The translations under genes and the position numbers were made by a program. DNA of 64,000 bases from Selaginella moellendorffii. Its lineage: Eukaryota > Plantae > Lycopodiophyta. Where the stretch lies: NCBI RefSeq assembly GCF_000143415.4, contig NW_003314377.1:1-64000 (forward strand). Direction: 5' to 3'. This document shows, piece by piece, positions 11,024 through 64,000 of the stretch. Under the pieces are notes generated by a model, which saw only the letters and a program-made list of their open reading frames with translations, ran no database searches and was not told the DNA's origin. Position 1 is the stretch's first letter. Each line of letters starts with the position of its first letter.

Positions 11024-11987
11024 ACTCCACCACCCAAGTTTGATGTCCTCATCGAATGATAAACTATTTTAGAAAATAATACTAGCATGTATTACCCTTT
11101 CCATCCTTGGCACCTAGCCAATATTCGTCAATGGTTTGTCACCGAAGGCTCACCATGCCTTGTCCATCATCTAAGGAGCATAGTCTTTTAAACTTAGAGA
11201 CTTATTCGACCATTTGTGGTGGTTCTCTCCTTTTATTGGTTTAGTTCTTGCTAAACCTATTAGAGACACCTTCTCTATCTCAATCCCACTATTCATTCTC
11301 GAGTAGTCTTAGTTCCCATTGATATATCTTTTGCACTTTAGAACTTTTAATTTTGACTTCTCGAAATCAATTTCCTGGGTGTCTCCAACACCTTGCATTG
11401 CACATTTTGTACAACTCCACCTCCCCATCATAAGAAGTTCTCTACTTGAGGGTACTATCATTCTCTTTTCTATTTCATGCCACCTCTAGCACCAAGTTAT
11501 CATAAGTTGTGCTAAGGCTGTTCACAACCCTATCATTTAGCTACTTTGCCGTTCCTTCCCTTGGAGCTTTCACCTTTGCCAACTTAGAGCATTTGGGCAT
11601 CCATCCTTGGAAGCACGCTTCTTTTCCCATAATTTGTTAGCATCCAACACATTAGTGTTCCATGCTTAACTTTGCCATTTGAATTCCTTCAATGAACTCC
11701 ATAGCCCACACTTAGCCACTAGTCTTTTGCTCCTATCCTTTGATTGTTGCACCAAGTAACATAGGATCACTACCTCCATTCTTGAGGTATCCTTTTGGTT
11801 CCATGGCAAAGGCTCTACTTTGCTGAGTCTAGAGGGTGCTCACCCCTAGTGGGTCTTTTTAGCATTTTCTACTATGAGCTCTGTTCACGGCCCAACTTTG
11901 CGACCCTCCCATGGGTATTTCCTAGAGACTACTTTCTTGGACTCATTATACCATTATTTTAGCACAATTGATTTCCCTTTAAGTGTC

Positions 11988-24025: not shown

Positions 24026-27000
24026 TTAATGAATCTCACCTTGAACCCGGGTTATGAATGCTCTTGCTGCATCTCTTGCATGGTCTGGCAAGGTGATGGT
24101 GGCACTCTGCTTCCGCATCCAACCATGCACAACATTATCCACCGATATGCTCATGCTGGGATCCCTTGGATTCAGCACCCATCTCTTTTCTAGGCAATCC
24201 TTCGTATATCCGGAACTTGGCTTGAACCACTCCACAGTTACATTGAAGGAGTTAGTTTCCGCGTCCTCCTCTGCATCAGTGATGCAGCGCCCCACCCATA
24301 TCATTTGTTTTTTATTACTGGGTCTGACAAGCACGACCATTCCTTTGCAGACCTGTACTGGATTGAATGCTGAATCCGGCTTCTTGTTCCTCGGCCCACA
24401 ATAGTGATCCTCAACATCGTTATCTGTCACTGCATTTCCAGAGGACATTGTTCCGCTACTATCTGGTGCTCTGGGTTCTGGCCAAAAGGACTCTTCCAAT
24501 TCTTCATATACAACCGGCCCATTTTGGATAGCAGATATAATCTTCTCCCAGTATTCGAGCAAAGGCTTGCACCTCTTAAAATAGGATTCTCCACCAAACA
24601 CCAACCCCCTCTTCCAGAAGGCAATATGCTGTCTAATCCCGGCCACTATACTTTCCTGGTCTTTGAGTCCATCCGGGTGCATCGGCCGTGGGGAACCCTG
24701 AGGAATCATAGGTTCCCCAATTATGGGATCTCTCTTGAAGAGTTCAATGCCATCCACTGGCAGCCACACTGTGTCCCATTCTCTCATCTTGTACCTCATC
24801 ACTGGAGCACCGTCACGCATGCTGAAATGAAACTGAAGAGGCTTGGAGTGGCCAATCAGCGTTTCGGATCCGTCCCTGATGTAGCCTCTTACAAACCCCT
24901 TAAAGTCTGGAACCTCTGTCACAAGTGCAGCTTCAACAGTGCCTTTGATGCAATTTTGGAATTCATCGTAGAGTTGTGGGAGGGTGAGGACATTGGATCG
25001 CCGGAGGGACTCTGCCAGGTGACTGAACATGGCATCGACGTCTTCATGAGTGTGCCCAACCATGAGAAAGCCAAGTGTAACCGTTTCAAATATGCCTTTG
25101 GCAACAAGCATCGCCAAGTACGCGAAGACGTACATGTTTTTGTTCTCACTGCCAGCATTGTCTGTTTGGAGCAGAAGATGGGGTGGAAGGCCACATCGGC
25201 CGCAAGAACTTCCTTGAGATTCTGCTTCGTTTGGATGAGGCTGTGCATTCACCGGGCGACCAGCCTCGTCGTAATGGCATGAGGCCTCACGTGATAACCC
25301 TACAATCTGACGGCCAACATATTCACTAGGATGGCATGGGGCCCCACGCGATACTGCAAGCCTTTGCTCCTCCTCCAGCTGAACCCTGTATGGGGTTCGA
25401 TCGACAAGGGCCTTATGCAAGGGTTGGCCGTTCAGCTCAGTCTGCGCACTTTGCAGAGACCTTAAGTGTTTTGCTAAGGACGCAATCATCATGTTTGCAC
25501 CCCCGCCACCCCATAGAGGCACAAAGAAGTTCCCATAGTTCTGGGCACCATGCCCATGAGCGATTATGCCAAACAGAGACACAGGCAGCTGCATGGATGA
25601 AGAGATTGCCTTGGGGGCAGGATTGAGTCGAGGTAAGCACGTCTTTTTCTGATCCATTTTGTCGTGGATGATGCAGAGGTAAGAGTCAGGTCTCTCCATG
25701 GAGAGAATCCTGTTATGATAATATGCAGTCCTGCAGCTTCTCTGCTCGATGTTGTGGTCGAGCCGCCTTCTAACCAACGTCTCTCGCTCTTGAGCGCTGC
25801 AAGAATTCTTCGACAAAGCCATTTTGATAGCAGTGCACTCGTCACACTTTGAAAAGCTGGAGTACTTTCCTATACTCACATCCCTGAACCTGTTGCTCCA
25901 CAATCTACTAAATCTAGATTGGCTCAGCTTCCTGTAGCCATTACTCTGGAGTTCCCGATTCACATCTTCCAATATGGCCCCCTTGGTATACATGGAAGGG
26001 AGAACTCGTTGGGTGTCTCGTGTTCCATCTTCCAAGAGGCGGGTTTTATGTGGTTGCTGCTCGCTACATGTCTCGACAAACCTCTTGAAGATTGCCTCTC
26101 CATATACAACATGACCCCTGGTTTTGTGCGTACCGTTGTTCCCATGGACTGCCTGTTGAACCCTTTGTTCCTCGAACTCAGTTTTGATTCTGTAGAATGT
26201 GGTTCGAGGGACTCCATAAATGATTCTCCATGCCTTCATGCAGACCAAACCCCTCTGGAAGACCATGCCCCCCACCTGATGTTCTGAAGCATCAACAGAT
26301 GACCGTAATGCCTCATACACAAAATTGCGAGCTGCCTTCCAGGACAATGTCTTGTATCTTGCTCTCTCCTCTTCAATAGCATCCCAATCAGCATGTTGAC
26401 AGCACCTCCTCTTGCAACAAGCAACTGTCGAGACCATTCGAACCTCCATCGCCATTTTCTGCCTTTTCGGTTCGTTGCTCAGATCCCTTTGGCTGCGCTG
26501 TAGGAAGGTGTACTTTCTTTTCCCATGAAGAGATGTTCTGTCATCAGTTGTAGTGGTGTTTGATTGTGAATCCTTCACATTCTCAAACACTAAATGCCTC
26601 AATTTCCACCGCACAATGCTTCCAATAGTCAGACTGTTTTCTTCTGTGTCAACAACCTCTAAAATTGCAACTCCAATATCATCCCAGCCCAATTCTTGAT
26701 TAGCAACCGCATCTCTTGGATCGACAACTGTGGCTAAGCCCTCAGCTACCACCTCCCCCTCGGGGTTGTTTAGAAACACCTTTGCCTGAATCCATGTAGC
26801 ACGGTTCTTAAGATCCACGGAGGGAACATGCGTCGCACTTGCGCTGTCCCCAACATCTGCTTTCTTCTGAAGATTTTTCAAGGCAACAACAACATTTACC
26901 CCGACGACCATCTCTCCTCGTTCAATAGCGACCACATTCCCATCGAAGACAGTCTCTACTGATACAGCAGCATTGCCTTCCCCAAGCCTTTGACAGTGTA

Positions 27001-27094
27001 TAACAAAGTTCCGATCCATAGACACAAGGGTCCCTTTTGCAACTCTCTTCCCACCATTCAAAATGTAAACCTTTTCCCCAACCCTGAAGGCCAT
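24026..27094 (-). CDS. Intact 1022-aa DNA transposase-like protein (RNase H-fold DDD, probably Sola-like) with accessory terminal domains
   Basis: Motifs CCKRRCC, VCMKAWRIIYGV, HGN, FSKCDEC, IIHDKMDQKK, LLQTDNAGSENKN and FLMVGHTHEDVDAMFS. A splice acceptor (TTTCAG) lies just upstream of the ATG, so an upstream exon is possible. No TIR/TSD was found, and the superfamily call is tentative. Confidence 0.75.
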   Translation of the reverse strand: MAFRVGEKVYILNGGKRVAKGTLVSMDRNFVIHCQRLGEGNAAVSVETVFDGNVVAIERGEMVVGVNVVVALKNLQKKADVGDSASATHVPSVDLKNRATWIQAKVFLNNPEGEVVAEGLATVVDPRDAVANQELGWDDIGVAILEVVDTEENSLTIGSIVRWKLRHLVFENVKDSQSNTTTTDDRTSLHGKRKYTFLQRSQRDLSNEPKRQKMAMEVRMVSTVACCKRRCCQHADWDAIEEERARYKTLSWKAARNFVYEALRSSVDASEHQVGGMVFQRGLVCMKAWRIIYGVPRTTFYRIKTEFEEQRVQQAVHGNNGTHKTRGHVVYGEAIFKRFVETCSEQQPHKTRLLEDGTRDTQRVLPSMYTKGAILEDVNRELQSNGYRKLSQSRFSRLWSNRFRDVSIGKYSSFSKCDECTAIKMALSKNSCSAQERETLVRRRLDHNIEQRSCRTAYYHNRILSMERPDSYLCIIHDKMDQKKTCLPRLNPAPKAISSSMQLPVSLFGIIAHGHGAQNYGNFFVPLWGGGGANMMIASLAKHLRSLQSAQTELNGQPLHKALVDRTPYRVQLEEEQRLAVSRGAPCHPSEYVGRQIVGLSREASCHYDEAGRPVNAQPHPNEAESQGSSCGRCGLPPHLLLQTDNAGSENKNMYVFAYLAMLVAKGIFETVTLGFLMVGHTHEDVDAMFSHLAESLRRSNVLTLPQLYDEFQNCIKGTVEAALVTEVPDFKGFVRGYIRDGSETLIGHSKPLQFHFSMRDGAPVMRYKMREWDTVWLPVDGIELFKRDPIIGEPMIPQGSPRPMHPDGLKDQESIVAGIRQHIAFWKRGLVFGGESYFKRCKPLLEYWEKIISAIQNGPVVYEELEESFWPEPRAPDSSGTMSSGNAVTDNDVEDHYCGPRNKKPDSAFNPVQVCKGMVVLVRPSNKKQMIWVGRCITDAEEDAETNSFNVTVEWFKPSSGYTKDCLEKRWVLNPRDPSMSISVDNVVHGWMRKQSATITLPDHARDAARAFITRVQGEIH

Positions 27095-27728: not shown

Positions 27729-28400
27729 TGTGTCTGTACAGTATCAAAAGTTATATATTGGCTTGTCTTTTTGAATATTCTCCTTTTATTACCATGATAG
27801 TAGAAGATTGGTATTTTTGGACTCTTTATCAATCTCTACCTAAGCTAGTTGAGAAACTAGTTAGTAAATGTGTGCTTAGACTGGAAGAACACTAAGGACA
27901 GAAATCTTAAACTATTATTTAATCAAGTATATTTGATATAGTGATGAGAAACTTATATTATTATATTACACTTGGTAATGTTATGAACCCCCATAATCCC
28001 TCAATATTCCCTTCATTGAGGAGGCAAATGGGGCTTATGCAAGGTTCTAAATATATAATAAAGAGAATGGGTAAGTAGGGCATGGTTGAGCAACTTGATA
28101 TATTGTCTAGCGTTTTGCTAAGTATATTTGTCTTTATTTTATATCTAGTTTAGGTGTAAGCCCAAACTCCATACTATGCTAGCTAATGGGGTACTTATAT
28201 CCTTGTGTATAGGCTATTTGTATGTTGAAATAATATCAAATTTTGTTTAGCTTTCTTTTGCATGCTGATTTTGATCTTAAAAGCTTTAGGACTATTCTAA
28301 TATTGTTCCATGTTCATATTCCTTAGTGATCATATTTTGGAGTTGATTTTTCATCTTGGTCATATTTTTAAGAGTTGTAGATTTCTATTGACAATGTCCA
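27729..28400 (+). repeat. Old, diverged family B LTR fragment
   Basis: ctagttgagaaactagttag...cttagactggaag...actaagga and gtaagtagggcatgg...taagcccaaactcc match family B LTR segments. Confidence 0.7.
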
Positions 28401-28469
28401 CTTAAGCCTGGTCTTACACCACTTTATGGCTACATCAGTGGGTGATGATATAACCCTGAGGAGTTTAAG

Positions 28470-30212
28470 GCTAGATTAAACACAAATAAACCAATGGGGT
28501 AATTTAGTGAAGTGTTCAAGAATTAGCTTTAACTCCCCTAATATATTAGATGGTTAATATTCCCAATTTAAGTGTGGTTGGCACTACCTACTTGGATACA
28601 TTGTGTGGCTCATCAAAACCTCACTCTAGCCATATGGCTAATGCATTCTAATGGTAAAAGATGGGGAGAGTACTCATAAGGCTTGTATTGGGCCGTGGTG
28701 TTTTGAAATGTCATCCTTGAGTTCTTGACTATGGAAAGAAAGAGGAGTGCTTTTTGCTTAGTGACCAAAAGTATGGTTATATGGTGAAGAAGGCCCACAA
28801 AGTCAATAGGATTTAGTGGTTGGGCCTTTAGGCCTTGACCCAGTGGCAATGTTAGGCAAACATTGCAATTGACAGAAAGGGATTTAGTGGGGGCCAAAAA
28901 AGGGATATTGAGGGATGGTGTCCTTTATGTATTGGGGCATTATAAGGATGTTAAGGTGCAATCATGGGATGATCACTTGTAGATGGATGGCCTAGTCTTA
29001 GAAAGACAAGACTGTGTTACAAGTGGTTTTGAACTACCAATAGGACAAGGGTGAATGGATATAATAGATTGAAATGTTAATGGTACTTTTAGATGTCGGA
29101 ATTGAGATCGAATACATAGAATATTTGGACTAAGTGCTAAGCCAATGTGGTCTTGAGATTACATCTGGGGGTAAGTAAGTACCCTAATGCAGATAAGGAC
29201 CTATGAAGGTTATGAGTGAGACTCTTTAAAAAAGTCATAGGTATGGTTATGTGACTAAAGTAGAATGGAAAAATTAGTCCCTTATAACACATTTGGATTA
29301 AAAGTTTTGACTCAAACAATTGAGAATAGAAGTGGAACTTCCAAATAAGCATTTAAGGGACAAGCACAAAGATATCAAAAAATAAGCACAAAGTGATTAA
29401 TAAACAAATCTTTAAAAAGGGACAAAAGAATGATTAATATATGCCAAGTATTATGACATGTGGAAGTGTTGAGATTGAAGTCCTAAAACCTAAGAGCTCA
29501 AAGTGGAATGATCTTGGAATCAATTTACCCTATCAAGAAACTGAATGTTTGAAGTTTCAAATATAGAGATATCTAGGGCTTGATATATCCAGGGTTGGAT
29601 ATCTGTGGTATATTAGGGGGAGGATTCTAAGGCAATTAGTATGACTAAGGAAGGTTATATTCATAATATGAACACAAGGGAATTTAAGGCTAAAGTGAAT
29701 ATGGATGGACAAATAGATTTAATGAAGTGTTTAAGAGTTGACTCTAGCTCTTTTAGAAGATTGAATAATCAATGCTCCCAATCTAAATATATCTGACACT
29801 ACTTATTTAGATACTTTGACTCAAGAAAACCTCACTTTAGCCATGTGGCTAATGTTATTAAGACTTAGTAGATGGGCATTTATGACTTGACCTAGTAGCA
29901 ATATTTGCAAGCATTTAGTGGGGATTGAAAAAAGGATATTGAAAGGATAATATTCCTTTATATCTTAGATCATTTTAAGATGCTAACAAGTGGTTATAGA
30001 ATAACCACTCGCAAATGAATGGTTTGGTTTTATAGGTGGTATAAGTAGTCTTGGATTACCAATGAAACAAATGAAAATGGACATGATTTTAGCATAAGAT
30101 GTTAGTATGATGGTGGTACTTTTGGGTGTTTGATATGAAACTTGGACATATGGAGCACTTAGAAATAGCCAATCAGTGACTAAAATAGAATGGAAAATTT
30201 AGTTTCTTATAA
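28470..30212 (+). repeat. Two old family A LTR fragments (~28470-29290 and ~29650-30212)
   Basis: Reverse-complement matches to the family A LTR, each ending in the ...AGAATGGAAAA(A)TT(T)AGT..CTTATA terminus-like motif. Confidence 0.7.
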
Positions 30213-30901
30213 AAGGTTATGTTCTTTATTAACTCACTTGGAATACATAAGTTAAACATTTTTTAGTTTGAATAATATATTGGGATCCCAATAAAATTAA
30301 AGAGTTTATATTTGATCAAGAGAGCAAGGTTCTTAGAAGAGCTACAGCTTTTAATGGAGAGTTGCAGATTTTAATGTTCATTAATACCCTTTATTCATGA
30401 GGTTTCATCACCCAAATCTTAATTTTTATTCACACCCTCTGTTCACCAGGTTTCATTCATGCCCTCCATTCATGGAGGCCCCTTAAACAAAATATATAAG
30501 AGACTAAGAAGCCACTGAATTAAGTTAATCAACATTTAATAATAGTCACCTTTAGGTTTACTAGTACTGCTGCAAAACTTTTCCACTAAAGGGCTTAAAG
30601 ACAAGCATGTGTTCGGTGATCAAAAACTTTTGTTGCACTTGGTTCCGAACTTTAAGAATGTGGTTATTGTAAATGACAATAGTGATTTCTTTTTCAAGGG
30701 AATGGCTTTTCCTTGTAATGAATTGAATGTATATAAAATTTTATCAGAATTCTAGTGATCTCACAGCTAAGATAACTTTATTATACCATTTTTTTCCAAG
30801 CTAAATGAATGGAACCATCACAATAGTCTTTACTTTTGTTTTCAATTGACGTTTTTCTAAATGTTTTTGGAGTTGAAAAAAGAATCGTCTGGTTTCTTTC
30901 T

Positions 30902-42420: not shown

Positions 42421-44037
42421 ATTCCAACTTCAAGGCTTTACTACTAATCTCTAGGTGTCTTTTTGTAAAGCCTCTATACCACTTTTGACTGATAAAAGTG
42501 ATGGAAGCAAAGGTAAAAATAGAAGGATAAGAAAGAACAATAGTGGAATAAATATGAGGAAATATAAGACAAAGGGGGAGAAGTCTTAAAGTCATAGTTT
42601 GGTATGATTGTGCTATAACCAATCCATACCAAGAATGAGGTTAAAAGTTTAACTTGACACCACTCGCAATGTTTAAAATTCAAGCTTAAGATCTCCCACA
42701 TACACAATTAAGTTCACTTCATCCCCCACACATGAAAGAATGAAGACTAGCTTTATCATATGACACAACTATAAATGGCAACATGTGCCAACAAGTTGAG
42801 CAATAGAAAATAAATTTAAATTTATATCAACTAACATGGAGAGAATAATAAGAAAACCTCTTGTTATAAAAATGAACTTGGAAAGCAAACACTCCTATTT
42901 ATTAGGGCCTTGCAACCACCGTGATAGCCAGACATAGGTTGCATGTTTAAGCACCATCCATTTTCGGAGATGAACTAGTGCCAAGTGAACCCTTTAATAG
43001 CATTTTTGAAAGAAGGATAGAGAGGTCATTGACTTATTTATATAAAGACTTCCACTACTTACGTGACTCTTAATTTTTTAGAAGAATCTCTTTGTCAAAA
43101 CCTTCCATTGCAATATCACTAATAGAATATTATTAACACTAAGGCCTCCACTTAAAAAATGGAGGACACCAATTTAGAAAATGCCAACAACATTGATATA
43201 TGGCCAACTTCATCATATGCACAACAATGGATATCATGGTGTAAGTAACCAAAAAGAATGACTTGAAAGATAGTCCATGGGGTTCAAATATAAAGGAAAA
43301 GGGCTCATGAACAAAAGTGCACCCTTTTTTCCAATTGGTTAAGGGTCTTGGGATAGTTGGGGTAAAGTGTATTTGGGTTTGAATAGTACTAGGTTGGGTG
43401 ACTTCCCAGGAAGTCTAAATTCAAGAGCTTACAATTTGGTATTGTAGTTGTTCCTTCAACAATTGTTCCTTGAGCCCCTTCATAAGGGGCAAAGGCAACC
43501 CATAAGAAACAAAAAATAATCAAGTGTCGGAGTAACACTTGCATAAATGGTCCTTATAGGTAGGACATGAATACAAGTAGTTGTATTCTAACGAACTAGC
43601 ACCTCGAAAGTAAGACCTTATGAGTTGTGAGATTAGCAAAGTCCAAAGAGTTAGATGACTCGAGGGGAGTCAAGGAATGGTTTTAAAGGATTAGTGAAAA
43701 GATTTAGACTGAGGTATGTTGTGCCCCACGAAGATGGGGAGGATCATAAAATCTAAGTATGGGAATAGTGGGTATTTCATTGATGACAGAAAGTGCCATA
43801 CTAAAGTAGTGGGAAAGGTGTTCCTAGAAGAAAACAATTTTGGTTCAGAGTTGTGTGCGAACACTATAGTGTAGTGCTAACGGATAGTTGGCATAAGAAA
43901 CACTATATTAGTCTTGGCAAAGACCTAGACACTGATAAGTAGTGTCATAAAGGTAGGCTCGTGGAACTGATGGCGTGGAGACACCAACTATGCCAAGGTG
44001 TAATACCTTAAGGTTATGTTAGTGGATTCATGAGAAC

Positions 44038-45200
44038 TGTAAGAGACTAAATTTTCCATTCTACTTTAGTCACTTAACCACACCTCCGACCATTTGGAGG
44101 AGTCTTATTCACAACCTCCATTAGTCTAATTCAGGACTTGGGACTTGCTAGCCCCAAGAATGGCATCCATGCCACTCAACACTTGCACCTGGTCCAAGTG
44201 CTCCACGTGTCCGGTCCGAAGATTGACACCCAAAGGTACCACTGACATCTCGGCCTGTTACGCTAAGGCCATGCCCATTCACCTTTGCCGCACTAGTGGT
44301 CCAATATCACTTGCATCACCATCCCGTCTCTCCAAGACTGGGCCATCTGTTCACGAGTGGTCATCCTAGATCCACTCCTTAGCATCCTTAGGATGCCCAC
44401 AGACCTGGGGAATCGCCTTCCCCAAAGTCCCTTTGTCAGTTCCTACCAAGTCCCTTTCTGCCCCTGGCCGTGTTTACCAACACTGCCACTGGATCGAGGC
44501 CCCCAGGCCCGACCACTAAGTCCCATGGTCCTCTAGGACTTCCTCACCACACGACTGTGTCCTTGGTCACTACCCCAGAGGACTGGTCCTCTTCCTTTCC
44601 ACAGTCTAGGCCTTTGGGACAACATTTCAGAACACCGTGGCCTTACGCGAGCCACCTGGGTACTCTCCCCGCCTTTCGCCTTTAGGTGCTCTAGCCATGG
44701 GCTTAGAGCGAGGTTCCGTTGAGCCACGCCTGGTATCCAAGTAGGTAGTGCCACCCACACTTGGACTGGGAGCATCGGCCAGTCGATCTCCCGGGGGAAC
44801 TAGAGCCGGCTCTTGAACACTTCACCAAGCTACCCTGCTTGTCGGTCCGTATTCACTCTAGTCTTGGACTTCCCAGTGGTCAGTTCATCACCCAACACTG
44901 GGTCTGGCCTTCCTGAGCCAAACTGGCCTTTCTTGGCCAAACTGGCTCCACTGCAGTCCTCCCCCTACTATACTTTTGGAGCTCACCAAACCCCCCAGGG
45001 TCTGGGAGACGAACGCTTTGGGCTTTCACCCTCTCAGGCTCCGGACTCGGACTCGGACTCGGACTCGGACTCGGACTCGGACTCGGACTCGGATTCGGAT
45101 TCGGACTCGGACTCGGCCTCGGCCTCAGCCTCGGCCTCGGCCTCAGCCTCGGCCTCGGCCTCGGTCTCGGTCTCGGTCCCGATCTCGGTCTCGGTCCCAA

Positions 45201-45232
<32 letters not shown>

Positions 45233-45894
45233 CCGGTCTCGGTCTCGACTTCGGACTCCATCTCGGACTCCATCTCGGACTCCATTTCGGGTCCATCTCG
45301 GGTCCACCTCGGACTCCATCTCGGACTCCATTTCGGGTCCATCTCGGGTCCACCTCGGACTCCATCTCGGACTCCATCTCGGACTCCATCTCGGGTCCAT
45401 CTCGGACTCCATTTCGGACTCCAACTCGGGTCCATCTCGGGTCCACCTCGGACTCCTCTTCGGACTCCATCTTGGGTCCATCTCGGGTCCAGCTCGGACT
45501 CCACTTCGGACTCCATCTCGGACTCCATCTCGGGTCCATCTCGGACTCCACTTTGGACTTCAACTCGGGTCCATCTTGGGTCCACCTCGGACTCCATCTC
45601 GGACTTCAACTCGGGTCCATCTCGGACTCCACTTCGGACTCCAACTCGAGTCCATCTCGAACACTCCCACGTGTCATGTGTTGGTCCTTTTGGGTCCCTT
45701 TTTGGAGCCTCGCTTTTTGCTCACTTCGTGCTCGTTCCTCGAGCACTTCTTTGGGAGTTCCACTCCCGCTCTTGACTTTTCAAGTCGGAGCTTTTGGTCC
45801 AAACGTGTTACGCTCGTTTGGCTCTCGCTTCAGCCACTACCACGTGGCACCCTTTTCGGCTCCACTTTGGGGCCTAGGGATTTTGTGTCTCACA
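44038..45894 (-). mobile_element. Young family A solo LTR
   Basis: Termini TGTAAGAGAC...GTGTCTCACA and a perfect TSD, AGAAC, at 44033-44037 and 45895-45899. Tandem arrays lie at ~45040-45660. Confidence 0.95.
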
Positions 45895-46597
45895 AGAACC
45901 CTTTACCAAAGAAATCCCAATGGAAATGGGAATGGCATAGCTTAAGTTGGAAGGCATGTGGTAGAGTGTGGGGACCCAAATAATGATGGAGGTGTGGAAG
46001 CACTAGCAATGAGTTGTAAAACTTGACAACTATGAAGCAACTAAACAAAAGGTGCAAAATGATTAGTTAAACTGGTAGAAGGTGACTACCCAAGACTTCT
46101 TTTGGGATAAAGAAGTTAATTATACTCATAGGAGGAGGACTCTAGTGGAGCTAGTTTGGCCAGGAAAGGCCAGTTTGGCCCAAGAAGGCCATACCCAGGT
46201 GTTGGGTGATGGGATAATCATTGGGAAGTCCAAGACTAGAGTGAATATGGACTGACAAGCAGAGTAACTTAGTGAAGTGTTCAAGAACTAGCTTTAATTC
46301 CCCCAGGAGATTGAATGGTCGATGCTCCCAGTCCAAGTGTGGGTGGCACTACCTCCTTGGATACCTGGCGTGGCTCAATAGAACCTCGCTCTAAGCCCAT
46401 GGCTAGAGCACCCAAAGGCAGAAGGTGGGGAGAGTACCCATGAGGCTCGTATAGGGCCACGGTGTTCCAAAATGTTGTCCCAGAGTCCCAGATGGTGAAA
46501 AGGAAGAGGAGCAGTCCTCTAGTGTAGTGACCAAGGATGCAGTCACATGACAAGGAGGTCCTAGAGAATAAGAGGACTTAGTGGTCGGGCCTGTGGG

Positions 46598-49500
46598 TGT
46601 AGTGCACCTGAATTTGGAGCCGAACTCCAAGCCCGTTGCGCTACGAAACGAGGGTCCGGTACAATCCCACGAGCACCAGCTCCCCGTATCCAGCACCTGC
46701 ACGCAAAATGGTGTCAGACGGAGTCTGGCACAATTTTGGCATACTCGGTGGCCTAACGCGAGGAGGAGGGTACTCCACCAACTAGAGCAGCGGGGAGCTT
46801 GGGCTTAGACCCAAGCCGAACGCAGAACAAGGAGCGACACAGCCCAGCGGGAGCCAAACTAATGTCTCAGGTGGTCAGACATGCATTCCAACCACTATCC
46901 CTACTATACATTTGGAACCCCCCACAGCCCCCCCCCCCCCTTGAGGGACACACGCTTTGGGCTTTCACCCCAAGCCACCCTTAGTACCAAGAGTTAGTCT
47001 CTGGGACAAGCTCGAAACTTACTAAATATGGAATGGCCTTAGATTGCGAATTTGGACACGGGACGAACACCATTGTGTTCAGGCCGACCTCAACATTCCG
47101 TAGATATGCCAAATGAGCGAATCTAGACACTTTCCATAAATAGCATTTGGGACCGAAACGAGACTAACACAAAGGGCGTGATAGCGAGGGTGTTTGGCAA
47201 ACATGGTAAGCTATCATCTAGCGAATATTGAGGGACTAGTCTCAATATCGCGGGGGTTCCCAACACTAGCAAGTGCAAGTCAACATCATGAGTTTCTCAT
47301 CACCGTGTCAAGTATGCTTGACTTAATGACAACTTAGGATTTCCTTCCTTAGTGCCCTTCCGGTCTAAGTGCACATGTGCTGACCAGTTTCTCAACTAGC
47401 TTGGGCAGAGACCATAAAGGGAACCAGCAGTACCGACCTCCTGCCGTCGTGGCAGTAAGGAGAGAGAGTCCGTAAGTACTAGCCGACAAGTATCTTTCGA
47501 TACCCGAAGTCACATGCGCGACACTCTCCCCCCCTTGGGGAAGATCGACGTCCTCGTCGATGCATACCCGAGTCTAGCAAACCGTCAAGGAAACAACCCC
47601 GAAAGTTAATGGAAAGCACACTATGTGGGAAATGCACCGACTTAAATGAGTTATGGAACGACCTCTCCTCTACGTCAAAAGACGCTAAGACTCAAACACC
47701 CTCCGGCCGTCACCGACAAGGAAATGACCAACGGAGTTAGCCACCCTTGCTGCTCCGAGTACCACTCGGCTTACAAAGGAATGATACATCCCTGCCCGCA
47801 GGGATATAGGGAGAAGGCCAGAGGCCCGACTGCCCCTGAGCAAGAAATCAACCCCGTCGGGAAGATTTAGACAACTATTATAAACTGGCAAATGAAGTTG
47901 TTTACATGACCACGCCCCTTTTTTTTTTTTTTGAAAACGAGCATCGAGAGAGAGGCGGGGACTTGTGATCAGTCTATAATAGTTATCCCCATGGTTATGG
48001 ATTGGACCCATGCACCGAAGTGCCAAAGTCAGCCTGCCAAAACTGACCCAAGTACAAATGATCGAGAGAAACGACACTTTGAGTGATAGAAATATTTTAC
48101 TTTATTAATTTGCAAGATTTATTACAAGATTTACAAAAGCTATTTTTTATTACTATGCTCATACTCCGTGACAAGCTCACGGGCATGTACAAGATTACTA
48201 AGAGGTTCCCAAGTTGATTCACAAGTCGGGTAACCTTTCCACTTAACTAGATATTCCTTCGCACGACCACCACGTGCCTTACGAGACAAAAGGATGGCCT
48301 CAACCTCATACTCCGGTTCACCATCAATAACATCCGGAGCTGGACGAACATTCCTAGAGCGGCTAGGATCCTCATGATATGGGGCCAGTAAACTGACATG
48401 AAACACATCATGAAGGCTGGACATCTCTTCTGGAATATCCAACTGATAGGATACATCACCAAGTCTTTTCAACACCCGATAGGGTCCAACATATCTCGGC
48501 AAGAGCTTCCGAGACAAAGAGCCCTTAATGTTCAAGTTCCGGGAAGATAGCCACACCTGATCTCCCACTAGATAGGATACATCCCGACGATGCTGATCTT
48601 TATCACGTCGATACTTATCCTGAGCTTTGCCCATCGCCTCAGTAGCTCTAGACCAACCGTGGCGTAGCTGCTCTGCATAAGTTTCAACGGCTGGGACCAA
48701 CACTTCGGTCATTGGTTTCGGGACAACAATCTGTTGAGGAACCCCACGAGCATTTCCTTGCAGCATCTCCCATGGAGAACAGCCTATAGCACTGTGAAAT
48801 GTGTTGTTATAACAGATTTCTGCTGTATCCAAATGCTCAATCCAATCGCTTTGGTCCACTGTGACATAGTACCGCAGATAATCCTCAACTTGAGCATTCA
48901 CGCATTCGGTCTGCCCATCGGTTTGAGGATGATAAGCTGTACTAAACTTCAACTTGGTACCAAACAACTGGAATAGGGTCCCCCAAAACTTCCCCATAAA
49001 CCTCGAATCTCTATCTGAGATCATTTCTTCAGGGAGACCACGAACTCGCACTACTTCATGGAAAAAGAGCTTTGCTGCTTGTTTCACATTTAATGTTCCC
49101 ACAGTGGAATGAAGTGTGCAATCTTTGACAACCGATCCACNNNNNNNNNNNNNNNNNNNNNNNNNNNNNNNNNNNNNNNNNNNNNNNNNNNNNNNNNNNN
49201 NNNNNNNNNNNNNNNNNNNNNNNNNNNNNNNNNNNNNNNNGTGTCACACTTTGAAATGGCCATGCCGGTGCTGGAATGCACTACAACTTTCTAGCCTGCT
49301 TCTCAGTTCTGCGCTTACATTGCTGGCATACAGGACAGGAACGGACATAGTCCGCTACATCATCTTCCATACCAGACCAGAAAAATCCCTTTTTCAATGA
49401 AGCTAGAGTCTTTCGCTGTCCACCATGTCCCGCTACTGGAACATCGTGATGTTCCCGCAGAAATAACTGCTGAAGATCCTTAGAGGGAAGATACAATCTT

Positions 49501-52500
49501 TCTTGCTTATAGAATATAAGCCCATCCCGAACTGAGAAGTGAAGTTTCGCATTAGTGTGACTAGCAACTTTTGCTGTTTCGCTACCAGGGCTCTGCTTCG
49601 ACAACTCCGCACGGCGTAAGATTGTCTGCGCCAATGGATCTCTTCCATACGAAGCCCGAACGTCCTCCAACCAGTCCGAACTGATTGCCGATATTGCCCG
49701 GAATTGAGCTTGACGACTCAACGCATCCGGAACAATATTGTCTTTACCAGGTTTATATATGATTTCAATATCATATCTAGCAAGCTTCTCTTGCCAACGA
49801 GCCTGCTTCGGCGTAAGCTTAGGCTGCGTAGCAAAGTAGCTCAGTGTGTTACTATCTGTATAAACCTTGGTATGTCCACCCAAGTAGTGTCTCCAGTGTT
49901 CCAGGGCCGACACTATAGCAAACATTTCTTTCTCATGCGTTGGCCATCTTTGTTGGGTCTCATCCAATTTCTTGGAATAGAACGCAATGGGACAACCATG
50001 TCGCCTTAGCGTAACACCAACTGCTTTGTCACAATCTTGCTGCAACACGGCACCAATAGCATAACCAGATGCATCACAATGCACTTCGAAAGGTTTATCA
50101 AGATCTGGGATCCTGAGAACAGGAACCGTAGTCAAGATCTCCTTCAATCGTGCAAAAGCACGCTGGCAAGCTGGTGTCCAATGAAACGGAATACTACTCT
50201 TTGTCAACTCAGTCAATGGAAGAGCAATCCTTGTAAAATTGCGGACAAACTTGCGATAGTATCCCGCCAAACCGAGAAAGGAACGAACATCTGATACAGT
50301 GGTCGGGACTTCCCAGGACTTCACCGCTTCCACCTTCTTTGGATCGACCTCAATCACGCCACCACCAACTATATGTCCCAGAAAGTTTACGCGCGATTGA
50401 CCAAAAGCGCATTTACTTTCCTTAGCATACAGTTTGTGTTCGCGCAATTTTTGAAACACCAGCTCCAAGTGTTTCAAATGATCCTCTAACGTCTCACTAA
50501 AGACAAGAACATCGTCGATGTATAGGACAACAAATGCATCCAAATAATCTCCAAATATTCTATCCATCATAGTGCTGAACGTTGCCGGAGCATTGCATAA
50601 CCCGAACGGCATGACAAGGAACTCATAAGATCCATACCGAGTCTTAAAGGCTGTCTTCTCCACATCCTGATCTGCCACCCGTATCTGATGATACCCGGAC
50701 CGCAAATCAAGTCGCGTAAAATACTTAGCCTTTAAGAGTTGGTCAAACAAGTCATCAATGCGAGGCAAAGGATAACTGTTTTTAACCGTGATCTTGTTGA
50801 GTGCCCGATAGTCAATACACATCCTCATGGCTCCATCCTTTTTCATAACGAAGAGGACCGGCGCTCCATAAGGTGACTTGCTTGGTCGGATATGACCTTT
50901 GTCAAGAAGCTCCGTGAGTTGCTTCTTGAGTTCAGCCATCTCCTTGATGTTCAACCGATATGGAGCTTTCGTAGGTGGTTTAGAACCCGGAATAATCTCA
51001 ATCCGATGATCAACCTCACGGCTAGGAGGTAGCCCTGGCGGCAAATCCTTCGGAAAGATATCCTGATTCCTCGCCAACAACTCCAATATCCTTTTTGGTA
51101 CAGGATCAACCCCGTCGCCGATTCATACTGAGTCACCAATACCCTCAGCTTCCATCACTTGAACCCAAAAGGTTTGACATCCCCTCTTAGCTGCTTTTTG
51201 AGCGGCCCTCGCAGTCAGGAACTTTGCATCCCAATCTTTTGAGGAACGCTTTTGCAATTGAAAGGATACATCAGGATGTCCTTCTGACTTCAACGTGATA
51301 CGACTTTGTCTAGCACCATAAATCCCTTTTATATACTTGTTGAAGAAATCCATACCAAACACCATCTGAAAATCTGGTATCTTCAACACTACCAAGTCCA
51401 CTCTTTCTTTCCACTTGGATATCTTTATTGGAACATCACTCACAAACTTTCTGGCTACTTGCCCACCTTCCGCAAATCGGAAGTGCATAGGCGACATTTG
51501 CTCAGCATTCAATCCTAACAACTTAACTAAGTCTTCGGATATCACACTGTGCATAGCTCCCGTGTCAATCATCACTCGGATTTGGTGTCCACGGACAAAG
51601 CCTACCAGATACATTAACGGATCAGTGTTTGCATTGACTGCAAGAAAAGCTTGAGGAAAGCAACGAAAGTTACTCACCTCTTCTTCCTCATAGTCTGCAT
51701 TGACCAACTCGTCAACCCCTTCGGCTTCACCACCACCGTCTTCCCTCATGACATTAACCCGAGACCTTGTCTTATGCTTGTTGGGACATTCCGAGGACCT
51801 ATGTCCCGACTCTCCACAATGGAAGCAATGACCCACACTACCCGTTCCGCTAGGAGCAGGTTTTGTAGGTTGCTGCTATTTGTACCCACCAGGAGGAGGA
51901 ACAGAGGGCCTAGGACCAGAAGAAGCTGCTGGTGGTCTCCAACCACCACCACCTTTATTTACCGTAGCTTGTGAGCCCCCAGGGCGGTACTTACTTTCCA
52001 CCCTTTGTTTCCGATCACCTTGCCTATTCCCAGAATTTTTATTCTTGTCCGAGTTACCAGCATACGATTGCTGATATTGTTCTATGAGCGAGTGACTAAA
52101 GGCAACTTGCTGCGCTGCCTCTTTACACTCCAGGTACGTCTTCGGCTTAAACTTCAAAATCTCATTTCGAGAAAGTGAACTTAAACCCTCCAGGAAATAA
52201 CTCTGAGCATCTTCGTCACTCATATTTGCAATCATAATGCGCTTCTGAGCAAACGCATTAACGTAATGCATAAGATCCCCTCGCTGCTTTAACCGCCGCA
52301 GCTCCGCGCGAAGTCTTAGACCAAGATCATCCGGCAAGTATTCCTTACGGATACGAGACCGCATCTTGGTCCAACTTCTAGTCTGCCCTTTTTCAGCACA
52401 CACCTGGCGCCACCAAGTTTTGGCATGATCGGTGAGAAAGGATTGCGCGCATGCAACTTTCGTACGATCATCTACATCTGCCGCTATGAAATAGTTTTCC

Positions 52501-54011
52501 ATATCGTAGACCCAGTCCTCCAAAACTTGATAGTCCCGCATGCCTCTGAAATTGGGTGGTTTCGGAGGCTTGAACTTTGAAACTCGTGCAATCGGGGGTG
52601 GCTGCAAAACTTCATTGTCCTCAGAACTCGAAGAGGAGTCCGGTTGCTTAGGCTTAGCTGGTTTAGCTGCCTCAGCTTCTTTCTTCCTCTTCTTGTTCTC
52701 CTTCTTCAATTTGCGAATCTCCCTTCGCAAATTCTCGATCTCAACTTCCTGAGCCGTACGCTGCAATGCCGCAGCATCTGGCTCTTCCTCTTCCGACTCG
52801 GCCTCAGCCCCTTCCGCAGCATCTCTAGCAGGAGTTTCCTCCTCTCGATTCGCCCGTCTAGAGGTTTCAGCGTCATCAGCACGGTTCCTCTTCACCATCC
52901 TGCTAGCTGCATGCATGCCTCTATCAGTAACTGAACATGCATACAATGTTCTTACCGAATGGTGCAATCCAACTAATCCTACACAGGTCGCTTCGGATCT
53001 ACTAGAAAAGTCTCTGCGTATGCAACTTGAGTCAGGAAATCCGACAAAAGTTGGATAGGAATCGCTGAGACAATCCCTCTGATACCAAATGTAGCGCACC
53101 TGAATTTGGAGCCGAACTCCAAGCCCGTTGCGCTACGAAACGAGGGTCCGGTACAATCCCACGAGCACTAGCTCCCCGTATCCAACACCTGCACGCAAAA
53201 TGGTGTCAGACGGAGTCTGGCACAATTTTGGCATACCGGTGGCCTAACGTGAGGAGGAGGGTACTCCACCGACTAGAGCAGCATGGAGCTTGGGCTTAGA
53301 CCCAAGCCGGACGCAGAACAAGGAGCAACACAGCCCAGCGGGAGCCAAACTAATGTCTCAGGTGGTCGGACATGCATTCCAACCACTATCCCTACTATAC
53401 ATTTGGAACCCCCCACAGCCCCCCCCCCTTGAGGGACACACGCTTTGGGCTTTCACCCCAAGCCACCCTTAGTACCAAGAGTTAGTCTCTGGGACAAGCT
53501 CGAAACTTACTAAATATGGAATGGCCTTAGATTGCGAATTTGGACACGGGATGAACACCATTGTGTTCAGGCCGACCTCAACATTCCGTAGATATGCCAA
53601 ATGAGCGAATCTAGACACTTTCCATAAATAGCATTTGGGACCGAAACGAGACTAACACAAAGGGCGTGATAGCGAGGGTGTTTGGCAAACACGGTAAGCT
53701 ATCATCTAGCGAATATTGAGGGACTAGTCTCAATATCACAGGGGTTCTCAACACTAGCAAGTGCAAGTCAACATCATGAGTTTCTCATCACCGTGTCAAG
53801 TATGCTTGACTTAATGACAACTTAGGATTTCCTTCCTTAGTGCCCTTCCGGTCTAAGTGCACATGTGCTGACCAGTTTCTCAACTAGCTTGGGCGGAGAC
53901 CATAAAGGGAACCAGCAGTACCGACCTCCTGCCGTCGTGGCAGTAAGGAGAGAGAGTCCGTAAGTACTAGCTGACAAGTATCTTTCGATACCCGAAGTCA
54001 TATGCGCGACA
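46598..54011 (-). mobile_element. Full-length Ty3/Gypsy chromovirus (family B, coding type)
   Basis: LTRs 46598-47523 and 53090-54011 are near-identical. TSD GTGGG at 46593-46597 and 54012-54016, PBS (plus strand CTCTGATACCA) at 53077-53087, PPT starting at 47524. Domain order is gag-PR-RT-RH-IN-CHD. Confidence 0.97.
48140..52898 (-). pseudogene. gag-pol polyprotein with chromodomain, interrupted by 3 in-frame stops and an N gap
   Basis: Gag (AKTWW, LKQRG), zinc knuckle CFHCGESGHRSSEC, protease MIDTGA, RT LYIDD, RNase [12 protein letters not shown] zinc finger HHD..GH..CPVC, FSTAYHPQTDGQTE, GPY and chromodomain EYEVEAIL...EYLVKWKGY...STWEP. Stops at 51876, 51123 and 49281 are all in one frame. 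Confidence 0.92.
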
Positions 54012-54785
54012 GTGGGCCATGATCTAGTGGTAGTGTTGGCGAATACAACCATAGACAGAAAGGGACTTGGTGAGGACCGGAAAAGGGATATTGGGGAAGG
54101 CTATTCCCCATGTATGTGGGCATCCTAAGGAGGCCAAGGAGTGGATCTAGGATGATCACTCCTAAACAAATGGCCCAATCTTTGAGAGACAAGATTGTGA
54201 GGCAGGTGGTGTTGGACCACTGATGTGGCCAAGGTGAATGGGTAGGACCTTAGCATAATGGGCTGATAGATTGGTGGTACCTTGGGGTGTCGGTCATGGG
54301 ATCAGACATGTGGAGCACTTGGACCAAGTGTAAAAGTTGAGTGGCATAGATGCCATTTTCGGGGATAGCAAGCCCTAAGTCTACTTATGGAGGTTGTGAG
54401 TGAGACTCCTCCAAGTGGTCGGAGGTGTGGTTAAGTGGCTAAAGTAGAATGGAAAAATTAGTCGTTTAAAATTTGGTATCGGAGTGGTCTCGAGTCCGAC
54501 TCTGTTAGTTGGCTAGGGGAATTACATCACAAGTTGATTGACATCTAGTTGGTCCAGTTTGCTCCCACTGGGCTCGACCCAAGAGGTAGGGTGTCAAGAG
54601 AGCGGGGCTCTCGGGAGAGTTGCGGCTCTTAACTTCTATTCACGAGGGCGTGAATTTGCAAGGAAGCGTGGTGGATTGTAAGTAACCAAAGAGAATGACT
54701 CGAAAGACAGTCCATGGGGTTCAAATATAGAGGGAAAGGGAGTGTACCCCCTTTTCCAATTGATTAAGGGTCTTGGGATAATTAG

Positions 54786-54841
54786 GGTTAAGCATCCTTG
54801 GGTTTAAATAGTACTGGGTTGGGTGACCTCCTGGGAAGTCC
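54786..54841 (+). promoter_or_regulatory. 5S rRNA-derived Pol III internal control region (A-box to C-box) within the LTR
   Basis: GGTTAAGCATCCTTGGGTTTAAATAGTACTGGGTTGGGTGACCTCCTGGGAAGTCC aligns ungapped, 46/56 by my count, to a plant 5S sequence recalled from memory (AGTTAAGCGTGCTTGGGCGAGAGTAGTACTAGGATGGGTGACCTCCTGGGAAGTCC). Confidence 0.85.
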
Positions 54842-56518
54842 AAACTCAAGAGCTTACATATGGCCACAACTACATCCTTGCCCTTGTCCTTAAACACAAG
54901 TAACAACAATGTTAACTTCTATTGGAAAAGGAGTATTTCCCATAAGAAATGGATTTAAAAGATGTATAGTAAGAAGTGGAAAAGGTGATATTTCATAATG
55001 TTGTATTAATCAAAAAGCATTGTCAAGGGTAGCTAAAGCAACTATATGTACAAGTCCTATAAGATCTTGAAAAAGTGTTAGCCATAACTCTCCCAACTTG
55101 ATCCACTCCAAGTAAGAGGAGAAGCAAATGCTAAATTGTATAATTGACTTATATAGCCTTCGATAAAAATGATATAATTATTGAAAAGCATAATCACAAT
55201 TGTCACCATGTCCAAATATGTGTTTAAAGACATTTAAGAGAATACTAAAATCTACACAAGTGGTTGCACAAACCATTATACCACTATAATGTTGTCCCTT
55301 TGAAACATATGGGAAACTTAGCAAACACTAAGTATCATCTAAAAAATGATAGGTAACAATCATTATAAAGTGATTAAACCAATAATATATATCATCCCTA
55401 GAATTTCTATGGAAAAACTTTAATCAAACGCAAGGATTGATAGTAAAAGCAAAAAGAACTATATTACACACTATGAATGCCACCATCAACCAAGTTTGAT
55501 TGTTCAACAGCAACTACATAGCTTCAAGTAATTACACCAATTGTTATTTTAGAGTTAAAGGAGGAGAAGGCAACTTTACCATGAGGATAATAGAAAAAGA
55601 AAAAGCAAGAGAGAAGAAATTGAAAAATTACAAAAAAGATTGAAATCTAGACAATGCAAAAGTTAAATATAAACCAAAATCCCAAATCTAAGCACTCTTT
55701 AGAGGCAATTAAAATTGCCTCTCACCTTCATTAATATATAAGTGTATGAAATATGGAAATGAAATATAGACATGTGCATATTAATTAGCACAAAAACTAT
55801 AGTTTATATATAGGAGCAAGTGGTCCAAATTAAAACTAATTTAATGACTATAAAAATTCAACTATGCTAATATTAATATATGCTATTGTAGCTTTACATT
55901 TCAAAATTAAATATATTGCTGTGAAGAAATATATTTCAAAATATCAAAACCTTATTTAACTTCATATAATAATTACTTCTCTTTTGGCTTAAATCCATCT
56001 TCATCATTGTTTGATTTGCTTACCTTTAATGGCAGGAATAGGATTGTGCCTAAGACTAACCCTAGACCTGCTAAAAATATAAACATAAAATAGTTATAAA
56101 TTGAATCTCAACCAAAGAAAGATAATATGTTAAGAATATTTGTAAGAAATGAGTCTTGAAATTTTACAAAATACAACAATAAATATAAAAATTTAAAATT
56201 TTTAGTTTTTTATAGAATAATAGATTGCATGATAATCTTCTGAGTGACTATTTCACACCCACCATTAAATTTGTAAATTTCATGGTAATTTGTTCGCAGC
56301 ACTACACTATTATATTAGATTGTAAACTCTAATTTAATAGCTAAATTTAATGGTAACTTGTTCATGAGAAATTAATATTAAATTAAGCTAGTGTTACAAT
56401 TAGCATTTCTTTTGCATTTTTTGCTAAAATACTAATACTACACTTTTGTAGGATTATGATTAAATTATTCCATGAATATTCTATAGGGCTGCTACAGTAG
56501 CACTCTGGCCAAATTCAA

Positions 56519-56740
56519 GTGTTTCTTGTCAATCACAAGTTCAAGTTGTCTGTGGTGGTGATTGATGTGCTGCCACAGTTGGAGGTCATGCTATTGTTCA
56601 TCATGAGGCTGGACAAGATCGACCTCAAAAAGTGCAAGGAGCACTGTATGGTGGTCACCAACACACCTGATGTGTTCACAAATGAAAAAGCCAATCTTGG
56701 AATGGTGCTACTACTGGGAACAATGCAGTAGATTGCTACA
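56519..56740 (+). pseudogene. Fragment of a D-2-hydroxyacid dehydrogenase (HPPR/HPR2-like)
   Basis: IDVLPQLEV...LDKIDLKKCKEHCMVVTNTPDVFTNEKANL, followed by a premature stop. The fragment is isolated. Confidence 0.75.
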
Positions 56741-62700: not shown

Positions 62701-63765
62701 ACATCCTCAACTCTTTAAGAAAATATACTATTCCTAAGATCCCAAAGTCATTCCTTTATTGACCCTTTTCTATCCACCACATTATTAACATATTCATGTA
62801 TAAACTAAAGTGGAGAGTCATGCCTTCTCAACATACTACTCCTAAAGGAAGACCCACTCATAAAACCTTCTAATGCCAATATCAAGTGGTGATATACTTG
62901 AGCACTAATAAAAGTCGGACTAAGGAATAACTCTGATACCAAATTGTAAGTAACTAAATTTTCCATTTTATTTTAGTCATTTAGCCACACCTTCAACCAC
63001 TTAGAAAAGTCTCACTCACAACCTCTATATATCCTATTCCAGACTTAAGGACTTGCTAATCTCAAGAATGACATCTATGCCACTCAGCCTCCCCCCCCCG
63101 GAGGGATGATCACTTTGGATCCAATAGCATATATTAATATTTGGATTTGAACTCAGACTCAGTCTTGGACTTGGACTCGGTCTCGATCTTGGTCTTGGTT
63201 CCATCTCAAACTCCATCTTAAACTCCATCTCAAGTCCATCTTAAACTCCATTTTGAACTCCATTTTGGGTCCATCTTGGACTCTATCTCGGACTCCATCT
63301 TGGACTCCATCTTAGGTTCTATCTTGGACTCAATCTCTGACTCCATCTTGGACTCCATCTTGAACTCTATCTTGGGTCTATCTTGGACTTCATCTTAGAC
63401 TCCATTTTAAACTCCATCTCGGGTTCATCTCAGACTCCATCTTGGGTTCATCTCAGACTTTGTCTTGGGTCCATCTTAGATTCCATTTCGGACTCTGTCT
63501 CAAGTCTATCTCGAACTCCATCTCGGGTCCATCTCGACACTTCTACGTATCATGTGTTGGTCCTTTTGTGTCTTTTTTTTAGAGACTCATTTATTGCTTG
63601 CTTCATGCTCGTTCCTTGAGCACTTCTTTGAGAGTTCCACTCCCACTCTCAACTTTTTAAATTGGAGTTTTTAGGCCAAATATGTTACACTTGTTTGGCT
63701 TCCGTCGGCCACTATCACGTGCCCTTTTGGTTACACTTTTGAAGTTCTAGGATTTGTGTCTCACA
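59740..63765 (-). mobile_element. Family A element: internally deleted 5' LTR (62945-63765), PBS and decayed internal region
   Basis: Plus-strand CTCTGATACCA (62931-62941) sits next to the LTR terminus TGTAAGTAAC, which fixes the family A orientation. The interior is collinear with 11760-11987 plus 19257-21220. Confidence 0.85.
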
Positions 63766-64000
63766 ATAGATAGTTACCTCTTGCTACAAGGATGGTCTAG
63801 AATAAGATAGCTTCTAGGAGTTACAAGTTTGTATATGAGCTCTTGAAAGTTATGTATTATGCTTTATAGTATGCTGGTTTCTTGTTGTAGTTTTTTGACT
63901 AGACAAGTGGCATGTGATGTGCTTTATGTATGCATATTGTGTTGGTTGAGCTTTGTAATTGATTAAAATATAAATTTTGTGATAAGATCTAAGAAATTAT

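Follow-up and report, generated by a model that had tools for sequence, protein, structure and literature searches.

Heterotypic three-LTR complex of Cassandra and a non-coding retroelement family joined at the primer binding site in Selaginella moellendorffii

Template switching is recognised in the literature by complexes of three long terminal repeats (LTRs) with a target-site duplication and similar outer LTRs (Sabot and Schulman 2007, PMC1950507). In that study the internal LTR was common to two internal domains, the outer LTRs were alike, one 5-bp duplication was present, and two co-packaged RNAs were proposed as the source. For Cassandra, a TRIM (terminal-repeat retrotransposon in miniature) with a very short non-coding interior and a whole-element length of 565-860 bp, homotypic three-LTR copies are common (Yin et al. 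2014, PMC4079214) and have been discussed as reverse-transcription products (Kalendar et al. 2020, PMC7215508). Here we describe a three-LTR chimera at 43240-54858 of contig NW_003314377.1 of Selaginella moellendorffii, in which a Cassandra element is combined with a non-coding LTR family, designated as family A; the analysed window is a stretch of 64 kb, plant-like and dense in transposable elements.

The chimera resembles the PMC1950507 complexes in its internal LTR common to two internal domains, its single 5-bp duplication, and its proposed origin, and its outer LTRs are consistent with this, but those consist of three LTRs of one family with a switch proposed at R, whereas here the middle LTR is foreign and the switches lie at the LTR end and the primer binding site (PBS). 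The LTRs are therefore not all of one family, since the middle one, of family A, has no similarity to the Cassandra LTR body. The three-LTR and tandem Cassandra copies likewise possess LTRs with box A and box C, a PBS for the initiator methionine tRNA (tRNA-iMet), an internal LTR with polypurine tract (PPT) and PBS, and an outer duplication; however, they are homotypic and can form by unequal LTR recombination, while the middle LTR of the chimera is unrelated to the outer ones. New non-autonomous elements have also been explained by recombination of packaged RNAs of different kinds, as for BARE2 and VejuL (cited in PMC1950507), but these are multi-copy families of hybrid sequence, whereas the chimera is one decayed copy that keeps the boundaries of both parents side by side. 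Finally, the Helenus TRIMs and their Copia partner (Kojima 2024, PMC10886601) are similar just inside the LTR and not in the LTR body, as are the two families of the chimera over ~60 nt; the Helenus partner is autonomous, while family A is non-coding. The heterotypic, PBS-joined form is a new variation on the known three-LTR complexes.

The segment 43240-54858 is a single insertion in a repeat of family E. The target-site duplication is CATGG on the left (43235-43239, + strand) and TATGG on the right (54859-54863, +), identical at 4/5 bases with one C/T transition, and the empty site is represented by an E-family paralog at 6244-5456 (-), to which the flanks, once joined, can be aligned over 802 bp through the junction (E 2e-108). 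Compared with this paralog, whose site is undisturbed, the joined flanks contain 5 extra bases. The duplication expected of one integration and the junction-spanning paralog thus indicate that all of 43240-54858 entered, or grew inside, one insertion site, and the first-pass annotation, which had proposed a single unit whose flanks rejoin family E, is borne out in this respect. The unit comprises 11.6 kb overall and ~2.3 kb without two nested insertions.

Without the latter the order is Cassandra LTR, A-type PBS and leader, ~0.8 kb of non-coding A internal sequence and a PPT, followed by the A LTR, the canonical Cassandra PBS, internal domain and PPT, and the Cassandra LTR. The first-pass annotation had given this order, apart from the PPT before the A LTR, and its coordinates, and both are found in the sequence, while three of its details are corrected below: the leader behind 43437, the short internal domain, and the "partial" A LTR. 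If 46129-46139 is a PPT and the ~920 bp behind it form a complete short LTR, each of the four internal boundaries coincides with one that retroelements naturally have, namely Cassandra LTR/PBS, PPT/A LTR, A LTR/PBS, and PPT/Cassandra LTR. The swap is reciprocal, the Cassandra LTR standing before the A PBS and leader and the A LTR before the Cassandra PBS and domain, and both switches are in register inside the motif CTTACA-ATT-TGGTATC. Each family possesses the LTR end CTTACA, the ATT spacer, and the tRNA-iMet PBS; the leader motif ...AGTCCGACT... is likewise found in both.

Onto the region of the second switch, 53800-55100, sequences of the same species were mapped at 80% likeness, namely contigs from three DNA runs and unassembled reads from one RNA run. 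Behind the A LTR are placed the ATT spacer and the Cassandra PBS TGGTATCGGAGT (54471-54485, +; PBS 54474-54485), which corresponds to TGGTATCAGAGC at 10/12 positions, then the canonical Cassandra internal domain (54486-54659, +), identified by depth and RNA loose-end consensus, and the Cassandra PPT region AAGGAAGCGTGGTGGAT (54660-54676, +) directly before the TG of the 3' LTR. The depth over 54504-54679 is like that of the Cassandra LTR, about 100-fold higher than that of the E flank. Joints that go back tie the Cassandra LTR end to the interior (54857->54471, 54859->54486, and 54863->54487); the first of these is the canonical junction of Cassandra LTR and PBS and was seen in one RNA read as well as in contigs of runs X2 and X3. 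In the RNA reads aligning from 54471 on, the Cassandra LTR end lies before the aligned part, and RNA reads running off the Cassandra LTR end go on as TATCAGAGCGGTCTCGGGTCCGACTCTGTT, which the locus matches at 23/25 positions. The RNA loose-end consensus of canonical Cassandra copies after the LTR end is ...TATCAGAGC, in agreement with the Cassandra PBS TGGTATCAGAGC directly inside the 5' LTR. Depth, joints, and RNA loose ends together identify 54471-54676 as the canonical, high-copy, transcribed interior of Cassandra. The joints give a canonical Cassandra unit of about 580-590 bp; the chimera copy falls outside the range of 565-860 bp owing to the A block. Contigs of canonical A copies agree with the locus through the A LTR and PBS as far as 54484 and then leave into CTGTTCCTTAGTCCGACTTTTATTGGTGCT, which is the A leader (46 contigs of X2 and 28 of X1), and since they diverge right behind 54484, the switch from A to Cassandra lies inside the PBS. 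The internal PBS (54474) is Cassandra-like at 4/5 family-distinguishing positions.

The beginning of the short domain had been described as similar to the family A leader and read as a trace of recombination. According to the RNA and DNA reads, canonical Cassandra copies in this genome start in the same way, and the motif in question, AGTCCGACT..TTAGT, is common to both families, so the argument is lost. After the PBS ~60 nt of the Cassandra domain align with the leader of A2, one of two family A copies considered here (the score was reached by 3/500 dinucleotide shuffles, p about 0.006), and a second collinear block covers the Cassandra PPT and LTR start (10/1000 shuffles). These two weak blocks make the A2 leader at 62740-62941 (-) collinear with Cassandra from its PBS through the internal domain and PPT into the first ~30 nt of the LTR. 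As far as such alignments can indicate, the A leader and the Cassandra interior may be of shared ancestry, or family A may derive from an older Cassandra fusion. The common motif GTCCGACT was also compared with the arms of the primer tRNA, but no convincing match was obtained and the idea was dropped. RNA run X25 contains sense reads of other Cassandra copies over both the interior and the LTR (54471-54858), some of them crossing the LTR-PBS-domain junction, and the RNA depth of Cassandra is about ten times that over the far more abundant A LTR.

At the first switch, the Cassandra-type 5' LTR (43240-43433, +; 194 bp, TGTAAG...CTTACA, with a decayed 5S box A) is directly followed by ATT, TGGTAT, and then TGTAGTTGTTCCTT. 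The segment 43434-43470 (+) thus consists of the ATT spacer, a decayed tRNA-iMet PBS, and the start of an A-type leader with a small local duplication of TTGTTCCTT. The PBS annotated at 43437 is present and adjoins the Cassandra 5' LTR, but the sequence after it is the A-type leader and not the Cassandra-type one: the 14 positions after TGGTAT agree in register with the A consensus at 10/14 and with the Cassandra consensus at 5/14, and the family-distinguishing positions after the 5' LTR are A-like at 5/5, where the canonical A leader was taken from 46 contigs in X2. After the LTR 3' end and TGGTATCAGAG the Cassandra-type continuation is GCGGTCTCGGGTCCGAC..., and the A-type one is CTGTTCCTTAGTCCGAC.... 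The family A internal sequence is then found in two parts, 43471-44037 (+), in which 43483-43932 is 77% identical to A2 62391-61928 (-), and 45900-46128 (+), which is 79% identical to 21211-20993 (-) of the other copy, A1, and 84% identical to A2 61790-61684 (-); both 43483-43932 and 45895-46118 are A leader or internal sequence in sense orientation.

The homology to A LTRs starts at TAGGAGGAGGA (46129), and 46129-46597 together with 54012-54470 match their 3' part of ~930 bp. In this region the A-unit PPT TAGGAGGAGGA (46129-46139, +) is followed by the left part of the internal A LTR, short form, up to a nested chromovirus (46140-46597, +; 85-89% to other A LTR copies) and by its right part (54017-54470, +; 82-86% to other A LTR ends), which ends in ...TTTAAA, a decayed CTTACA, with a contig majority of C at 54469. 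This end is in register with the LTR end and PBS of A2 and is followed by ATT and PBS. The motif TAGG[AG]GGAGGA has three occurrences in the window: 46129; 29614, in a small A-type element; and 44967 (-), at the T/M module boundary of a long LTR. In long A LTRs the same polypurine motif lies between a 5' module with many tandem repeats and the remainder, and in the small A-type element the 3' unit is preceded by GTATATTAGGGGGAGGAT, while the sequence farther upstream is unrelated. Because the motif is kept before this independent short A-type LTR, 46129-46139 is read as the PPT of a short-LTR A lineage, and the internal LTR is bordered 5' by a PPT and 3' by a PBS (54474). Hence the ~920 bp after 46139, previously called a partial A LTR, probably represent a complete short-form LTR, judging by their start at the motif that also precedes the 3' LTR of the 29614 element.

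Two other interpretations of this block were not adopted. [quoted passage not shown] The small element itself (28364-30215, +) is a decayed member of the A superfamily. Its direct units (28439-29287 and 29663-30212) share about 69% identity with the A LTR of the chimera, and its ~330-bp interior starts with a degenerate PBS-like CATTTGGATTAAAAG and ends with the polypurine motif at 29614.

The Cassandra-type 3' LTR (54677-54858, +; 182 bp) contains 5S box A (11/12), an 18-nt spacer, and box C (12/13), i.e., the 5S motifs of Cassandra according to the box definitions and the diagnostic 18-nt spacing of PMC7215508. The 3' half of 5S rRNA was matched at 54769-54854 by the Rfam 5S_rRNA model with 29.9 bits (E 3e-4), below the gathering score of 38; at gathering thresholds Rfam gave no match in the whole window, so this match belongs to the E-value search only. 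It stops 4 nt before the LTR end, after which a 3-nt spacer and the PBS follow; in ferns the Cassandra PBS is located about 8 nt from the 5S part. The outer LTRs, which begin with TGTAAG and end in CTTACA, are 87% identical where aligned, with 23/182 aligned sites differing and 21 of these being transitions, and the 3' LTR has a deletion of 12 bp that are present in the 5' LTR, in the solo copy 22082-22263, and in the contig consensus. Their Kimura two-parameter distance is 0.144 versus 0.19-0.22 to this solo copy, which in this comparison of three old copies is consistent with outer LTRs derived from one reverse transcription. The solo copy (+), the only other Cassandra LTR in the window, likewise has an 18-nt spacing between box A and box C and is nested in the 5' LTR of A1, and the contig joints 54857->54048 and 54858->54118 represent additional cases, at other genomic sites, of Cassandra inserted in A LTRs.

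Family A had been annotated as Gypsy-derived, but its internal regions in the window bear no gag or pol remnant: tblastn with the proteins of the nested chromovirus gave no match in them, Pfam detected no retroelement domain in the open reading frames (ORFs) of the A2 interior, and no clear Gypsy relation was found in the window; its PBS-proximal sequence also differs from that of the chromovirus. A1 possesses LTRs at 9327-11024 and 21221-23015 (89% identical, minus strand) around a ~2.9 kb non-coding interior, and A2 possesses an LTR at 62942-63766, a PBS at 62930-62941, and then the leader. With LTRs, PBS, PPT, a long non-coding interior, and a high copy number, the contig depth over the A LTR being up to about 4-8 times that of Cassandra, family A shows the features of a large retrotransposon derivative (LARD). 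It is thus a LARD-like non-autonomous element and, being non-coding in the window, a fellow passenger of Cassandra rather than its helper. A1 has lost its LTR tip, its PBS, and ~1.08 kb of leader (20993-21240, -); the endpoint of this deletion is within ~15 nt of the site at which a solo A LTR is inserted in the chimera (44037).

Both later insertions that had been removed in the first-pass annotation are confirmed by their duplications. The first is a solo long-form A LTR (44038-45894, -; 1857 bp, tandem repeats at 45030-45650) with the duplication AGAAC at 44033-44037 and 45895-45899, and A2 shows the site empty and uninterrupted around 61835 (reverse strand). The second is a chromovirus (46598-54011, -) with gag, protease, reverse transcriptase-RNaseH, integrase, and chromodomain, the duplication GTGGG, and LTRs at 46598-47523 and 53090-54011 that are 97.6% identical. 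It contains the gap of N at 49141-49240, which lies in the integrase region between the ORF of the integrase zinc finger and that of the SH3 and chromodomain part and touches no junction of the chimera. Between ORF and gap there are 41 nt on the upstream side and 39 nt on the other, and an integrase core domain was detected on neither side. Outside the chromovirus the flanks fit together as one A LTR (positions 44500-44502 of the reference copy), and together with the LTR pair and the perfect GTGGG this supports physical continuity across the gap. The chromovirus has a tRNA-iMet PBS as in Cassandra and family A but another LTR end and leader; it was considered as a specific helper candidate and rejected, because its LTR end and PBS-proximal sequence are not specially like those of either family.

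On the origin of the complex, it is moderately probable that template switching at the shared PBS between co-packaged RNAs of Cassandra and family A produced it and that it then integrated as a unit. Minus-strand DNA would have been primed on Cassandra RNA and would have copied the Cassandra U3, PPT, internal domain, and PBS; at the identical PBS synthesis would have run on onto A RNA, through the A U5-R, rather than stopping. After a normal transfer to the A 3' end the A U3, PPT, internal sequence, and PBS would have been copied, and the Cassandra plus-strand strong-stop DNA would have landed on the A PBS. The resulting product, Cassandra LTR, A PBS, internal sequence and PPT, A LTR, Cassandra PBS, internal domain and PPT, and Cassandra LTR, would have integrated once in the E-family repeat with a 5-bp duplication and would afterwards have undergone decay of C-to-T type, the 12-bp deletion in the 3' LTR, and the nested insertion of the solo A LTR and the chromovirus. 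Co-packaging with recombination at the PBS and LTR end had already been proposed in the first-pass annotation; the single duplication, the natural boundaries, and the in-register swaps agree with that proposal, while the reverse-transcription route and the co-packaging themselves are what we infer from them.

The in-register switches and natural boundaries are predicted by PBS-mediated template switching and are hard to obtain by ordinary nesting and deletion, and unequal LTR recombination cannot have joined a middle LTR to outer LTRs that are unrelated to it. Several points weigh against the template-switching origin. A DNA-level route is possible if A was inserted exactly at the boundary of LTR and PBS; the unit is old and decayed, and its junctions are called on short stretches of 14-25 nt. 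Only one copy was found in the examined data, and a second copy with another target-site duplication was not seen, no dedicated copy search having been made. The mapping covered 53800-55100, so that the junctions 43433/43434 and 46128/46129 are known from the assembly alone. Also, the A internal part lacks the leader positions ~20-545 of A2, which calls for a short source element or a later deletion, and the 5' end of the short A LTR is uncertain, as most copies have no clear TG right after the PPT.

The DNA-level route can be specified as an insertion of a short-LTR A element, with the duplication ATTTG, between the LTR end and the PBS of a Cassandra element already in place, followed by loss of the A 5' LTR through recombination between the 11-bp repeats CTTACAATTTG, one formed by the Cassandra LTR end and the duplication and the other by the A 5' LTR end and PBS. 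It would yield the same final sequence; nesting and illegitimate deletions are common in the window, as seen in the solo LTRs and in the loss of the PBS and ~1.08 kb of leader from A1; Cassandra is nested in A LTRs elsewhere, and the element is so far a singleton. We nevertheless regard this history, the main rival, as unlikely, since it needs one exact position out of ~590 in the TRIM, with the A 3' LTR then in register with the PBS, and a precise loss of the A 5' LTR, and an A-specific target-site duplication is not visible. Filler DNA at break repairs in plants is well established, and the A block might have been copied from a tandem or one-LTR-circle A template when a double-strand break between Cassandra LTR and PBS was repaired or underwent gene conversion, the shared 14-19 nt acting as microhomology at both ends. 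The block is indeed flanked by a 10-bp direct repeat AATTTGGTAT (43433-43442 and 54470-54479), but the donor would have to be a special one, arranged as PBS-internal-LTR-PBS, and the break would have to fall exactly at the boundary; this explanation appears very improbable. The least probable, and hardly credible, explanation is an assembly artefact in which different loci were joined across the gap or repeats were collapsed at the junctions: the gap does lie inside the span, all parts are high-copy repeats, and no listed contig piece spans 53800-55100; however, the 97.6% identical chromovirus LTRs on both sides of the gap, the perfect GTGGG, and the flanks rejoining one A LTR speak for continuity, and the outer flanks, with their 5-bp duplication, fit a single E paralog.

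Similarity inside the LTR between a TRIM and its partner has been used as a pointer to shared mobilisation machinery, and there is no indication which autonomous family mobilises Cassandra (PMC10886601). The chimera had been proposed as possible evidence for the helper lineage; with a partner that is non-coding in the window it names no helper. If the template-switching origin is true, Cassandra and family A shared a particle and hence a common helper, and the chimera links two parasites of one helper. A PBS-joined heterotypic complex would then be a physical trace of Cassandra RNA in a particle with the RNA of another element, and the LTR terminus, spacer, PBS, and ~60 nt of PBS-proximal sequence common to both families are features expected for a common Gag, reverse transcriptase, and integrase. 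It is tentatively suggested, as a possibility we hold rather doubtful, that both families are packaged by the same autonomous element and that PBS-mediated heterologous strand transfer between Cassandra and other tRNA-iMet elements is recurrent in this genome. In that case a set of PBS-joined chimeras would name the helper lineage of Cassandra, and the helper question becomes countable as the families that recur as Cassandra partners in heterotypic complexes. A single chimera points only to a fellow non-autonomous family, and its significance is limited by its singleton status and decay.

Some minor observations concern the neighbouring sequences. The tandem repeats inside the long A LTR (45030-45650) have periods of 12 bp and 23 bp. 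Approximately one-fifth of the words sampled from 43100-46650 also occur in many very small runs (X7-X17); these words are perhaps the tandem repeats, which make up ~17% of 43100-46650, and this guess would mean a satellite-like abundance. A second element nested in A1 (11988-19256, +) has an LTR pair of 97.5% identity that is 82% identical to the LTRs of the chromovirus at 46598-54011; it is without long ORFs and is likely a non-autonomous relative of the latter. An intact ORF of 1022 aa at 24026-27094 (-) probably encodes a DNA-transposon protein, its product having a DUF7869 domain (E 2e-42), and behind the chimera an ORF of 70 aa at 56519-56731 (+) matches D-isomer specific 2-hydroxyacid dehydrogenases in their catalytic domain (E 2e-7) and might represent an exon or a fragment captured from a host gene.

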